Shown piece after piece: positions 30,192 to 36,986 of a DNA stretch of 64,000 nt; position 1 is the first letter of the stretch, and each line of letters starts with the position of its first letter. Under the pieces are notes generated by a model, which saw only the letters and a program-made list of their open reading frames with translations, searched no databases and was not told where the DNA came from. The translations under genes were made by a program, and so were the position numbers. The DNA comes from Cercozoa sp. M6MM (lineage: Eukaryota; Protista; Endomyxa: Ascetosporea), in the NCBI GenBank assembly GCA_040357565.1, contig JBDODJ010000061.1; one strand, 5' to 3'.

Positions 30192-30901
30192 GCCTTGGTA
30201 AATTGAGGGTACTTTGCCAGTGATACAAAAAAACTAAGGAACGAAAGAAAGTCTGTTCTTGGAGGGAGTGGCCAAGTGTCAGTTTGAAAGAGTGAGTTCC
30301 CCGTACAGTTGAGCGGCAAAGCACTGGTGGACGGGAATGACACCCGTCGGGTGTTGTTATTGGGTTGGCGTGAAGGAAAGAAGAGGAAAGGAGAGGAAAG
30401 AAGAAGGAAGAAGAAGGGCCTCTGTAAAGAAGGCAGGGACCGGTAGAAGCGGAGACAACTGGTCCTGGAGGGATCAGATTACCTGGTCTTTGAGTTCAGC
30501 TGCAAAAGCTTGCTCAAGGCTGTTCCACGGACTGAAGCTCTTAGTAGGTCAGGATCTAAGTTTAAACACACGGCAAAATCTTCCACACCCTCTCTTGAGG
30601 TATTTAGTAAGTCTTAAAGCGGCTGCCGCGCGGTTAGTAGATCGTGCTGTGGCAGCATCAGCGCAGGGCCAGGGGCCACCATTGTTGATTTCAAAGCACT
30701 GCAACACTCACGAAAGGTTGTGCATCACTGCAACCCCGCCCTTCCGATACCGCTGTTGTGCAACAGGCAAAAAACAAAATATGACACCCCCTTAATCAAT
30801 CTGAAGACTGCCCCCTGCCAGCCTGCGCGAGCACTGCACTCTACGCAATCCGGGCCATGAACGTGCCGAGTCGCGTAGGTAAGCGTAATCCGCAGGGCGC
30901 A

Positions 30902-33900
30902 ATGCAGCCAGATCTTTTTTCCGGTTGATTGTTGTTTGTTCGCGCGTCCCGCGCGTGTGTGTGCTGTTCTGCAGGTATAATTTTATTGGTAAATGCGCAG
31001 TGGCGAGGAGAATTGGCGCCACCCGGCGCGTTCTCTCATCTTGGGTGCTCGAGGAGGTAGCAATTTATTTGTTTTTGTCTTTTTGCGCCGTGAGAAGAAC
31101 GCGTTTTTTGCTGCATTAGGATCCGTCGCCGCCACGCAAGCACAACAACGCGGCGACCGTGGCTGACCTTCGTCGCATCTTTGAAGAGAATGGCGACATG
31201 TGCGTTTTGCTTTGCGTTGGTACTGCTGGCTGACTGACTGGTGTGTCTGCACAGCGAGTCGTTCACGCCGGAGGACCCGCTGGACGGCCCTGCGCGCAAC
31301 ACGCTGCTCGGTGAGACGTCGATGGTTCGTCTGCGTACGGGCAAGCAGGACCTCGATACGGCGGTAGGATTTTTGTTGAGTTGAGTTGCTTTGAGCTGAG
31401 TTGAGTTGCTCTGAGTCGAGATGAGTTGAGTTTTGCTTTGCAGGTGATGACGACGCCGAACTACGCCGAGTCGGAAGCGATGACGGTGACTGGTTCCGAC
31501 TGGGTGTACCGTCCGTCGCTCGATCGCGCCGATCGCTCGTACGGTTCGCACTACACGGAGCGACAGGCGCGTGAGTTGTCTGCAATGACTTCGGTACGAC
31601 TGGCTTTCGCTTTGAGTTGCTTTGCGATGAGTTGAGTTGAGTTGAGTTGAGTCGACTTGAGTTGCTTGTGCGCAGGAGCACCGCGTGCGCCAGCTGCGGC
31701 AGAACGTCGTGGAGGACATCCAGGCGGAGCATGCGCAGCTGCGCGAGCGACTGTACGGCGAGTTCCTGCAGTCGGACGGCGCTGGTCTGCAGCTGCAGCA
31801 GGAGCTGGGTACCTGGGCTGCTGTACCCTCTGCTTACTTCCCTTTACCCCCCTGCTTGCAGGCGAAATGACGGAGGAGCAAGTGAAGCAGCAATTCGAGC
31901 AATGGCTCCAGTCCTCGCGATCCGAGCAGAAGTAACATTCTTACTCCCCCCTTCCCCTCCCTACCCCTTGCCGTGCAGATGGTCGTCGGCGATGGTGAAG
32001 GCACTGGACGCCGTGGCGCAAGGCTACAGCATCGAGGAGCTGCTGCCGCAGATGCGTGTGCACGAGCGAGTCACTCTGCTGGGTGCCATGGGCCAGATGG
32101 ACCGCGCCTGGGACCAGGTGGCGCAGCTCCAACAGGACGCGCAGCAGGTCGACGGCGAGCTCGTACCCCCTACCCCTTTACCCCTCCCCTTTAGCCCCTC
32201 ACCCCCACCCTGGCAGAACGAGCAGCTCGAACTGGCCGAGTTCGCGTTCGCGCAGCGACTGCACCGCATCAACGACGGTTTCGACTGCGACGGTACCTCT
32301 TGCTTTAGGTGGCTGTGTGTCTGGTCGATCAAGACCGAACGGTACTGGACCGAAACCGTCCTTGCTTCCTCACTCAGGTAAGACACGTGCGCGTGCTGAG
32401 TTCGCCAAGCGTCGCTTCCGTCTGCCGACGGATCAGGTGCGACTTGCCCCCTCCCCCCCCCTCCACCCCTTTACCCCCCCCCTTTCCCCCCCCCCCCCCC
32501 CAGGCGCTGCGTGACTGGCTCGACAAGCGTCGTCAGGAGCGTTTCGACCGCGAGAACGCCGTGCGATCGGTAGGCCGATTTCTATCTTACGGGGCACTAG
32601 GATTCTTTAGGGGGTGGTATTAAAGGGTGATATGGTTAAGAGGCTGTGATATGTACAGGTGGCACGCGACATTGTCGAGCGTGCCAACACGTGGGAGAGC
32701 GAGGACATCACGCGCACCATCGAGCAGCAGGACGACGAGTGGGCCGACTGGAACCCGAAGCTGCCCTTCCCGGCGCTCAAGCGCGACGAGCTGCGCTTCG
32801 AGATGGCCGAGCACGGTTTCATCCCCCACCCTACCCTCTTACCCCTACCCACCCTCTTCCCCTACCCTATCTCCTACCCCCCCGTACAGGTCGCGCGCAG
32901 ACGCTCTTCACGAAGTTTGCTGGCGTTGACTTCGACGACATGGTGGAGCAGGTGTCTTGCGTTTTACCACCCCCCCCCCCCCCCCGTCGCCCCGTTTCCC
33001 CCCCCCCCCCCCCAGTTGCCGCCGCTGGAGCACCGTCTGCGCGAGACGCGCAGCAAGGCGATTCGCAAGATGCGTTTCCGCAACCGTCACGACACCGATC
33101 GGTATCAATTGGATCAGTCAGTCACGTGGTCACACAGGGGTGGGTCATACTGGGTGGGTCACTGAGGATTGCCACGTGCGCAGCTACCCGTTCCAGCAGA
33201 AGGATCAGTTCGGCCTGCTGCGCCGCGAGCGCAAGGGCATCATGGGCTTCCAGGTACACAAGTTGTCCTGTTGGACGGATGAGTGGTCCATTTGGACCGA
33301 CGTGTGTGCGTGTCCGTTTGGACCGACATGTGTACCGGTGAGGACAGGCGTTTTTGTCGCGCGGCGATCTGTCGCAGCGCAAGTCGCTGTCGGAATTTGC
33401 GTTCGACCCGCGCTTCATGCCGCAGACTGTGCGTTTATACCCCCCCCCCCCCACACACAGCCCCTACCCTTACCCCCCTGTCCTCAGGTGACGCCAGGCA
33501 GTGCGTGGCCGTCGACGCTGCAGGTGAAGCTGACGACCTACCTGCCCGAGGATCTGGAGCGAGCCACGCTGCGACTGGTCGAGGAGATGGGCCATCTGAG
33601 TCGGTACCCGCGATCCCATCCTCCCTTACCCCTACCCCCCATCCCCCTTTACCCCCTCCGCCCGCAGTCGTCGCCGCATGCGCGAGCCGGTGCGCGAGTT
33701 GTTGGTGACGGGCGTGTCGACCAACACGCCGGCCATGAAGGCGGCCGGCACGCACCGCAGTGAGGTGCTGCACCACAAGCTGCGCGTCTTTGTCGGCGCC
33801 TTCCTGCGACAGGAGGTGGCTTTACTACCTGTTTACCCCCCCCTCTTACCTCCCCTGTTACACCCGTCTTACCCCCCTGCAGCTGCTGAAGGACGCGCAG

Positions 33901-36832
33901 GCAGCGGGCAAGAGCGAGAACGACGAGTTGCTGGCCGAGTTGGACGCGCAGGTGGCTCCGCTGGTGGCCAACATGAGCATCGAACGCAAGGGCGACTGGT
34001 ACCTTTTCACTGGGGACACGTAGCTCACTCGGGGCACTGGGTGTGTGACCCATGGGTGTGTGTGACACGTGTGACACGTGCGCAGCTTCTGGCTCACGCT
34101 GCCGCACAGCGAGTCGGAGCAGTCGGGCCAGCTCGGAGTGACGTACCGTGCCACGCGCGAACTGCTGCGCCGACTGCACCTAGACAAGCAGCAGCGCCTG
34201 CGTCGCTTCCTGGAGCTGCCTGGTACCTCTTCCTTACCCCTACCCCTCCCCTTCTTACCCCTACTTCACATCTTACCCTCCGTACTCCCAGTGCGTGAGT
34301 GCGTGCCGGACAATGTGATGACGGCGGCCAATCAGGACCATCCGCTGATTGCCAAGTACTTTACTATCTGCCAATCTTGTTGTATATTGGATGAACACGC
34401 TTGTTCGACAGGTACGTCGATCGCGGTCGCGACTACCGCATCGACACTGAGTTCGACGTGGATCTCGACGTGGCGCGCTCTGCGTCGGTACTACCCTTTA
34501 CCCTCTTACCTTTTTAACCCTCCTACCTCCCCCTCCTGCAGTCGGTACTGGGTCACTACCCGCGTGCCGACACGGAGCAAGGTCGCGCCATGCTGGACGA
34601 GGCCGTTGACGACGCGCGCGCGCAGAAGCGACGCGGCAGTGGTTTTACCCCCCCCCCATTTACCCCCTTTCCCCTCTTCCCCGCCCCCCCCCCCCCTGCA
34701 GGCTCGCTGGACACGGACCTGAGCGATCTGCTGGACGCGCAGGACGATGAGCTGCAGCAGCGTATCGAGCAGTGGCTCGAGTCCAACGGTAGTCTGTCCA
34801 TGTTGGACCTGTCCATATGGACCAGTGATTAAGTGGGATGTATACTATTGCTGTGTGCGCAGAGGCGGGCGCATCACTACGCGCGCAACTCGGCGCCGCC
34901 GCCGGTCGTCGTCGCTTTGACCGTACATTTTTTATTTAGGGGGTGCAGATTAGTTAGGGGGTATTGATGGGGTTGGTTAAGGGGGCCTTTATCTTGATTA
35001 AGGCTGCGTATGCCAATAGGTGCCGTGACGGCGGCACTGGAGCGTCTGATTCCGCAGCTGCAGGCGTCGGTGGGTCCGTCGCTCCTGTCGCGCGACGATG
35101 TGGCCGACGAGTCGTCGCTGGTACCCCTCACCCCCACCCCTTCCTTTACACCCTTTACCCCCCCCCCCCCCAGCTGCCCGAGTTCCGGTACTGGCTGCCG
35201 TCGCCGGCGCAGCGACGACACGGCGCTGCGCGCGTCTACCACGCCAAGTTGGCGGTATACCCCCCTGTTTACCCCCCCCCCCCCCTGTTTACTCCTCCCC
35301 GGGATGAGTAGGCGGCGCGAGCGGCCAAGCTGCTGACGGCGCAGCAGAAGGCCGACGTCGAGAGGCAACTGATGTCGCTGCTGTCGCACGAGGTGGCCGA
35401 GGCGTTGCAGCGTGGCGAGGAGGTAGCCCCCACCCCTACTTCCTCACTCCTTTCCCCCCCCCCCCCCCCCGTACAGCTGACGACGGGCGCGTCGGAGGCC
35501 ATGGAGAACGCGGCCAGCGAGGGTCATCTGCTCGAGATGGTACCAAGTGACAGGACAACTGGACAGTCTGTGGACTTGATATGTCTGTACATTTGTACGG
35601 TACAGGTGGGCGGTACTATGGCACAGTCGGTGCGTGGACACGCCGAGTTGCGTCAGCAGTTGCTGCAGCGTCTGCAGGAGCACCGAGTCATCTCGCAGGA
35701 GGTTGGCCTTCCTGTTTACCTCCCCCATCTCTCTCATCTGCCATTACTATTGATGTGCACAGGAGGCCGATAAGTTGCGTGCCTCGCACAGTGAGGGTTC
35801 CCTGCCCTGTGTTTGCTTCGAGGTGTGTCGTTACGGTTTGTGTGATAGAGGCCTTCCGCGCGGAGGAGAACTACGTGCCGCAGGGCTCGCGCGACAGCAT
35901 GGCGACGGACCTGCTCACGGATCGCATGCTCGGCGGCGGTACTGCTGTTTTATACCCCCCCTTTCCCCCCCCCCCCCCATTTTACCCCCCTGTTTTGATA
36001 GGCGAATTCGGCGACGAGGTGTTCGATCCGCAGCTGCAGGGCCATCCGTTCGAGCAGCAGTTCCCGGTACTTATCCCCCCTGTACATTCCTTTACCCCAG
36101 TTACCCCCCCCCTCCCCGGCAGGGAAGCACGCTGACGAACGACAGGCAGGACACGGCGTTTGAAGAGTTCTCGCCGCGCGCACAGGCGCACACGCGCGTC
36201 GACACGGCGCATGTGGGTAGTTTTACCCCCACCCTTGCCCTCCCCTTTTACCCATGTCTCTATGTCTCTGGTAGGCTATGATGAGCCGTCGCTCGATCAC
36301 GATCACATTCCGCGACGCAGTCACGCCGATGCTGATCCGTCGGGCAACCAGGTGATTCTTACCCCACCCACCCATTTATCCCTTGTATGGTTGTGTCTGT
36401 AGGGTGAGGCGCACCCGGTGCGTGTCTCATGGATCGAGTCGCAGATCTACGGTAGGTCTTGTGCTGTTGTTTTACCACCCCCTTACCCCCTACCCCTTGG
36501 TTAGGTGACGAGAACGACGACTTCTCGGCCGTGGACGACGAGGCCGACTTCACGATGCTGTTGGAGCGACCTGAGGCGCGATACGAGGCCACGACGGTGC
36601 TTTACCCCCCTCCCCGCTTAACCCTCTCCTTACCCTCCCTGTGTCTGCAGCGTGCCTTCAACCCGAACATGATGTTCATGAAGACAAACCGGCGCCTCAA
36701 GGACTTCACGATGCGACGTTGCTACCTGTCGTCGCCGCACGTCCACGCCAAGTTCGGCAAGGAGCACTGGGAGCTCCGCTACGTGCGCGTACTACCTGCT
36801 CTTCTTTTCTGTTGTACATACGTAAGATATAG

Positions 36833-36863
<31 letters not shown>

Positions 36864-36986
36864 GCACAGCAATCCCTTACTTTCGAGAACGTGCCGCCCG
36901 AGGACCGCGAGGAGATCACCAAGATGCTCCGCACGCTCGCAGGTGCGCAGGTGGCCGTCAACTACAAGTTCACCGAGCTGCTCTAA
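30902..36986 (+). CDS. ~1,180-aa, 39-exon protein containing a split ribosomal protein uS10 domain (candidate mitochondrial uS10m)
   Basis: 38 introns join in one stop-free frame (37 GT-AG, 1 GC-AG). Arg-rich presequence-like start (VARRIGATRRVLSS). uS10 N-half LQVKLTTYLPEDLERATLRLVEEM in exon 33488-33603. uS10 C-half RRCYLSSPHVHAKFGKEHWELRYVRQSLTF...LAGAQVAVNYKF at 36651-36986. First exon uncertain. Confidence 0.72.

Follow-up and report, generated by a model that had tools for sequence, protein, structure and literature searches.

A giant nuclear-encoded candidate for mitochondrial uS10 in the amoeba Lemnamoeba sinaloensis

A 64,000-nucleotide stretch of contig JBDODJ010000061.1 from Cercozoa sp. 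M6MM (assembly GCA_040357565.1), here termed the window, carries at positions 30857-36986 of its plus strand a gene of 39 exons, whose product of 1,190 amino acids ends in a module resembling bacterial ribosomal protein S10 (uS10). The host is an amphizoic amoeba of Apofilosa with an assembly of 23.6 Mb. It was described in 2026 as Lemnamoeba sinaloensis (PMC13746701), and its genome was annotated by funannotate with transcriptome reads for training and updating (PMC11069148). The complete mitogenome of 48.5 kb is without ribosomal protein genes, and nuclear rps12 and rps4 are the only ones reported for this species (PMC13746701). Because the mitogenome lacks ribosomal protein genes, a nuclear gene for mitochondrial uS10 (uS10m) is expected, and we propose the product of the present gene as a probable candidate for this role. 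To our knowledge, no mitoribosome structure or inventory exists for any member of the Rhizaria.

The gene and its product

A splice-aware dynamic program and the mapping of a database protein both indicated one gene, in which the 39 exons are separated by 38 GT-AG introns of 47-122 nt, and the stop-free frame obtained with the dynamic program closes at the TAA at 36984-36986. The coding sequence (CDS) comprises 3,573 nt including the stop. Its product is NCBI record MES1909982.1 ('MAG: hypothetical protein MHM6MM_002654 [Cercozoa sp. M6MM]'), which we refer to as P0001. This record was recovered among 1.84 billion representative proteins by phmmer with exon 38 (36651-36788; 100% identity over the exon), and aligning it to the window places it, again with 100% identity, in exactly 39 exons between 30857 and 36986. 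A second, independent gene finder based on log-odds scores returned the same span with 35 of the 39 exons identical. The gene is single copy, as every exon maps to this locus only within the 23.6-Mb assembly. Full-length analyses of the product were run on the database record, while exon joins served only for checks of frame and identity and for the tests with a local hidden Markov model (HMM) described below.

These results bear out the proposal of a first-pass annotation, made from the letters of the window, that 39 exons splice into one stop-free frame. The single large CDS of that proposal stands; its length, given as 3,546 nt, is 27 nt less than in the annotation (3,573 nt), and its start at 30902 is replaced in the annotation by a start at 30857. 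The two possible first exons, 30857-30878 (annotated) and 30902-30923, share their phase and their length of 22 nt, and the sequence alone leaves the choice between them undecided. Both peptides quoted in the first-pass annotation are present in the product, as residues 498-521 (exon 17) and 1122-1190 (exons 38-39), and at 1,190 amino acids the protein agrees with the suggested size of about ten times that of a normal uS10. The Arg-rich, presequence-like character claimed for the N-terminus was also recovered as far as composition is concerned: the first 24 residues hold five Arg and no Asp or Glu, and the N-terminus is rich in Ser, Ala and Val. The ~1,000-1,050 residues ahead of the S10 module have a pI of 5.5 and are mostly predicted helix.

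On the sense strand, many introns of this gene (31809-36650) are rich in C, with poly-C and TTACCCC-like units, and 23 of the 38 contain no in-frame stop when read on from the upstream exon. The last two, intron 37 of 54 nt and intron 38 of 81 nt, have lengths divisible by three and contain no stop, giving a 176-codon open frame across exons 37-39 (36456-36983); retention of one or the other would add 18 or 27 residues, respectively, in or beside the S10 module without a premature stop. This frame, read through the two in-frame introns, had no match in Pfam or the PDB. A (TA)n microsatellite lies in the last intron (36826-36860), amid the S10-coding part.

The C-terminal S10-like module

Residues 1117-1184 of P0001 were aligned by the Pfam Ribosomal_S10 model (PF00338) to profile positions 31-97/98 with a sub-threshold score of 18.8 bits (E 0.002), and exon 38 alone gave 12.5 bits (E 0.18, profile 32-63). 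Comparison by hhalign with an S10 set consisting of E. coli rpsJ and 30 proteobacterial loci paired residues 1128-1182 with S10 residues 48-100 (E 0.02), and a local HMM of proteobacterial S10 chose the same C-terminal stretch, scoring residues 1117-1190 on their own at 9.3 bits (P 7e-5). The S10-like C-terminus noted in the first-pass annotation was thus found in the same place by all three methods. The match stops six residues short of the C-terminus of the protein, as it would in a free-standing S10. Exon-by-exon searches of Pfam and the PDB returned nothing but the weak S10 match of exon 38, and a search of NCBIfam returned nothing relevant.

The matched residues include the most conserved motif of the family. 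The comparison set has 28 columns with at least 90% conservation; at nine of these P0001 carries the same residue and at five a conservative substitution, and the matching positions include S-P-H, K, E-x-R and G..V. The motif of the hairpin loop, S-P-H-x3-K...E-x-R, is present together with the C-terminal G-x-x-V, and an alignment with 10 proteobacterial S10 sequences and the cytosolic copy places the identities at S1134, P1135, H1136, K1140, E1147, R1149, L1172, G1177 and V1180. The S-P-H form is of the bacterial and mitochondrial type, and the cytosolic uS10 of the same genome has A-P-S at this position. P0001 is the product of one real nuclear gene, read in a single long frame, and its S10-like C-terminus keeps the hairpin motif that binds ribosomal RNA (rRNA) in S10. 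We consider residues ~1117-1184 to be probably a diverged relative of uS10, judged from a sub-threshold match and not filed as a formal Pfam member.

Structure prediction was performed with AlphaFold2 (AF2), in a second run of which bacterial S10 residues 45-102 were aligned to residues 1121-1185 of P0001 only. In this run a strand (1152-1158), a helix (1162-1173) and a further strand (1179-1185) were modelled with a predicted local distance difference test (pLDDT) score of 73-90, and the C-terminal module overall had values of 53-90. Confidence rose along the whole chain, and residues 497-502 were modelled as a strand and 507-524 as a helix, at a pLDDT of ~55. The best-modelled part in both AF2 runs was residues 556-620 (~33757-34103; pLDDT up to 89 in the run with the alignment), modelled as a pair of long helices and then a beta hairpin, with no family assignment. 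Residues 526-597 gave a sub-threshold match to the Pfam SpoU L30e-like model (E 0.009, 17 bits vs a cut-off of 27). Fold searches with the AF2 model in Foldseek and VIA-align returned coiled-coil and helical matches only.

When all six frames of the 23.6-Mb assembly were searched with PF00338 and the S10 alignment, the cytosolic uS10 and one chance-level match were detected but no other bacterial-type S10; as these searches also missed the P0001 locus itself, their sensitivity for diverged, exon-split copies is low. P0001 is the only candidate bacterial-type S10 found, given a mitochondrial DNA without ribosomal protein genes and no other nuclear copy found, although another diverged copy may exist. 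A second uS10m, for which the first-pass annotation had proposed a search, was found neither in the mitogenome, according to the literature, nor in the nuclear assembly, where only the cytosolic copy was seen. The features of the locus are collected in Table 1 with related loci on other contigs.

Table 1. Parts of the P0001 gene and related loci (positions without a contig name are those of the window)
Feature	Position	Strand	Description
Whole CDS	30857..36986	+	39 exons, 38 GT-AG introns, 1,190 codons plus TAA; equals MES1909982.1
Exon 1 with start codon (MNVPSRV)	30857..30878	+	Annotated; donor GTAAGC; the alternative 30902-30923 has donor GTTGAT
Exons 2-3 (31001-31056, 31120-31199)	31001..31199	+	Residues 8-53; Arg-rich, acid-free, presequence-like by composition only
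Exons 4-35	31255..36351	+	~1,000 residues, mostly predicted helical, net acidic, no recognisable family
Exon 17	33488..33603	+	Residues 488-526; contains the proposed S10 beta1-alpha1 at residues 498-521
Exons 36-37 (36403-36451, 36505-36596)	36403..36596	+	Residues 1060-1106; rival contiguous beta1-alpha1 candidate, by eye
Exon 38	36651..36788	+	Residues 1107-1152; S10-like beta2, rRNA-binding hairpin loop with S-P-H...K...E-x-R, start of beta3
Exon 39	36870..36986	+	Residues 1153-1190 and stop; S10-like module: remaining beta3, alpha2, beta4
Cytosolic uS10 (eS20-type)	C128:15205-15456	-	Only strong PF00338 match in the assembly, 69 bits
Candidate giant uS2m	C28:59160-64801	-	Crude gene-finder model, 16 exons, ~1,422 amino acids, bacterial-type Ribosomal_S2 match
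Cytosolic uS2 (SA-type) gene	C4:287329-288142	+	S2 match

Alternative readings of the gene and its domain

A number of results weigh against an identification of P0001 as uS10m. The Pfam score of 18.8 bits lies below the gathering cut-off of 21.2 bits, such that the S10 search of the full protein suggested in the first-pass annotation returned the C-terminal match (E 0.002) but fell short of the curated threshold; for this reason we call the protein S10-like and leave it outside PF00338. The hhalign probability of the match was only 2.3%, and S10 profile positions 1-30 were matched nowhere in P0001 by Pfam, hhalign or the local HMM, which leaves two thirds of the domain and no more. Searches with phmmer against all PDB chains found no uS10, and a search of the ESM Atlas produced noise only. 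Whole P0001, residues 1040-1190, the 176-residue C-terminal frame and exon 38 were used as queries, the last against 1.84 billion representatives, and no homologue was found among 1.84 or 5.8 billion proteins beyond P0001 itself and a spurious repeat protein (P0002). The search for orthologues proposed in the first-pass annotation thus yielded no relative in any protein collection searched. AF2 on the single sequence was uninformative (mean pLDDT 38), and the S10-like C-terminal strands of the second run are not independent evidence as the input alignment already contained S10. The low scores, the lack of PDB or ESM Atlas support, the orphan status and the incomplete domain would all fit a resemblance due to chance, in which case P0001 would be a lineage-specific helical protein with no relation to S10, perhaps a mitochondrial one, and the true uS10m would lie elsewhere or be too diverged to be seen. 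We regard this as quite unlikely, because an E of 0.002 over 24,736 models corresponds to ~1e-7 for the S10 family taken singly, the same residues were chosen by three methods, the matches coincide with the most conserved motif of S10 in its bacterial-type form and run to the C-terminus of the protein, and a nuclear uS10m is expected for which no other candidate was found. It is far less probable that a small 3' uS10m-like gene was merged by prediction with an unrelated upstream gene. Genes in this genome lie close together, with a median of just 162 bp between them (PMC13746701), and the log-odds finder chained neighbouring genes on contig C4 via micro-exons; however, the P0001 gene has GT-AG sites at all junctions, introns of 47-122 nt and no exon below 22 nt (its smallest is at least of this size), and hence no bridging artefact like that on C4. 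Two independent finders concur with the published model from funannotate, for which transcriptome reads served in training and updating (PMC11069148), and C-rich introns of one style occur throughout the gene. A separate 3' gene would, moreover, be without beta1-alpha1 and would have no obvious start upstream of the module except internal Met residues.

If the C-terminal module derives from uS10, the strand and helix that open the domain (beta1-alpha1) have to be accounted for, and residues 498-521, the adjacent stretch at ~1060-1105 and another protein are the candidates for their origin. The simplest arrangement, which is also usual among enlarged mitoribosomal proteins (PMC8660880), would be a contiguous but highly diverged S10 domain in which beta1-alpha1 lies at ~1060-1105 and the N-terminus is extended by ~1,050 residues with nothing inserted, the likeness in exon 17 being due to chance. 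By eye, an alternating strand at residues 1063-1070 (VRVSW) is followed by an amphipathic acidic stretch, and 'A-x-x-R-x-x-x-P' resembles the 'A-x-V-R-G-P-I-P' of S10. No profile alignment reaches upstream of residue 1117, however, and the stretch is very acidic, contains a proline and has a pLDDT below 50 (residues 1060-1106) in both AF2 runs. We treat a contiguous domain as a serious possibility, albeit short of an even chance, and as at least as likely as the split domain claimed in the first-pass annotation, in which residues 498-521 supply the missing beta1-alpha1 and pack on the C-terminal module, with ~595 residues inserted after helix 1. Residues 498-521 do show an S10-like strand and then an amphipathic helix, and they are the top site in the whole protein for a position-specific scoring matrix (PSSM) of the N-terminal 24 residues of S10 (20.7 vs 19.4 for the next site), but this score was equalled in 10% of shuffles (P = 0.10) and is statistically unremarkable. 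Exon 17 matched nothing in Pfam even at E 10, hhalign of the S10 set against P0001 gave no signal at these residues, and with the local HMM, windows across residues 496-535 scored ~0 bits and residues 480-640 scored -1.6 bits. Against E. coli S10, the top BLASTP alignment spans residues 469-515, is out of register with the proposed match and lacks significance (E 1.3). Fusing residues 498-521 in silico to the C-terminal module, a test put forward together with the claim, brought no gain in HMM score (8.9 vs 9.3 bits for the module alone), whereas other segments reached up to 13.6 and the mean maximum of shuffles was 15.3.

The sole positive result for a split domain came from co-folding of residues 480-535 with residues 1040-1190 in ESMFold2, run with no alignment. 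Interface scores (ipSAE) of 0.54, 0.01 and 0.64 were obtained (median 0.54), against 0.00 for the best of three controls, with runs sharing at least 39% of contacts and pLDDT values of 38-59 in the partner chain and 31-41 in the other. This outcome was rated 'weak support', and calibration of the method indicates that a pass at or below 0.60 is wrong in most cases, except where the pairing was likely beforehand. Docking in two of the three runs despite the presence in cis of residues ~1060-1105 counts against a contiguous domain. The strand modelled by AF2 at 497-502 could equally pair with the nearby hairpin at 607-620. There is precedent for bacterial-type folds built from separate pieces in the uS3m of Tetrahymena, made up of three proteins, and the split uL2m of plants (PMC7326499). 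On balance, we hold an S10 fold split in this manner to be somewhat unlikely. By analogy with the Tetrahymena uS3m (PMC7326499), beta1-alpha1 may also be supplied in trans by another chain. A peptide resembling S10 residues 3-27 on contig C18 (8357-8431, plus strand) was examined as such a source and rejected as probably a chance match: it scored 11.8 bits (genome-wide E 4.6) and 14.3 bits with the local HMM, the neighbouring exon is not S10-like and resembles a PPR/TPR-type helix, and the motif itself resembles a PPR-type helix. A second, degenerate S10 domain at ~470-620 likewise found no support, given the -1.6 bits of the local HMM and the different register of the BLASTP alignment.

A probable giant mitoribosomal protein and its known counterparts

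Of these alternatives, we favour the identification of P0001 as a nuclear-encoded, giant uS10m; on its sequence features it is likely, though by no means certain, to be such a protein, and it is the best candidate for this species. The Arg-rich, presequence-like N-terminus would direct import into mitochondria, where the S10 module (beta2, hairpin loop, beta3, alpha2 and beta4) would occupy the uS10 site in the head of the mitoribosomal small subunit (SSU). The preceding ~1,050 helical, acidic residues may then form a lineage-specific scaffold of the SSU head, as proposed for the extensions of uS10m, uS3m and mS35 in Chlamydomonas (PMC8660880).

A second candidate for enlargement is a gene model for uS2m on another contig of the same assembly (Table 1). 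This crude model has an internal S2 domain at ~646-887 and an Arg/Ala-rich, presequence-like N-terminus. A further S2 match, on contig C4, represents the cytosolic uS2 (SA-type), and the model obtained there was discarded, the finder having chained genes via micro-exons; a 100-base run of N is present on this contig at C4:283779-283878. Together, P0001 and the ~1,420-residue uS2m model suggest extensions of ~1,000 residues on universal mitoribosomal proteins in this organism. The boldest form of this proposal combines a uS10 fold made from two segments ~600 residues apart (498-521 and 1117-1185), a new head scaffold of ~1,000 residues and the uS2m model into a general trend towards giant universal mitoribosomal proteins across Apofilosa, which at present we consider unlikely.

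The P0001 locus is a concrete candidate for the missing nuclear rps10 of L. sinaloensis. Should the identification be correct, L. sinaloensis would be an attractive target for cryo-electron microscopy (cryo-EM) of how mitoribosomes gain protein mass. It would also mean that routine annotation, which labels this product a 'hypothetical protein', misses core components of translation when the module is short, diverged and cut by introns.

In comparison with known systems, P0001 shares with the uS10m proteins its nuclear gene, presequence-like N-terminus and C-terminal bacterial-type module with S-P-H...K...E-x-R. Human MRPS10, yeast Rsm10 and Arabidopsis uS10m have ~200-240 amino acids each, and P0001 is ~5-6 times longer than typical; it also differs from these proteins in that its match is sub-threshold and limited to profile positions 31-97, with no recognisable adjoining beta1-alpha1 and no known orthologues. 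Large extensions of uS10m are thought to build a protuberance of the SSU head in Chlamydomonas (PMC8660880). Relative to bacterial S10/NusE (E. coli rpsJ, 103 amino acids), P0001 shows 24-31% identity over S10 residues 45-102 and retains the invariant P, E, R and V as well as S, H, K, L and G, but has ~1,100 extra residues and leaves the G-P-I-P-L-P-T signature and the N-terminal strand and helix unmatched. If the domain were split, completion of its fold by a segment distant in sequence would be akin to the assembly from pieces demonstrated by cryo-EM for the uS3m of Tetrahymena and the uL2m of plants (PMC7326499); in those cases, however, the pieces are separate polypeptides, whereas in P0001 the putative pieces would lie in one chain. 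Finally, the kinetoplastid proteins mS48 (1,788 amino acids) and mS49 (1,181 amino acids), the latter of which touches SSU head proteins including uS10m (PMC8998825), are of comparable size to P0001 and share its putative character of a helical scaffold. Unlike these mitochondrion-specific proteins, which carry no universal ribosomal protein domain, P0001 would have its scaffold fused to a universal domain.

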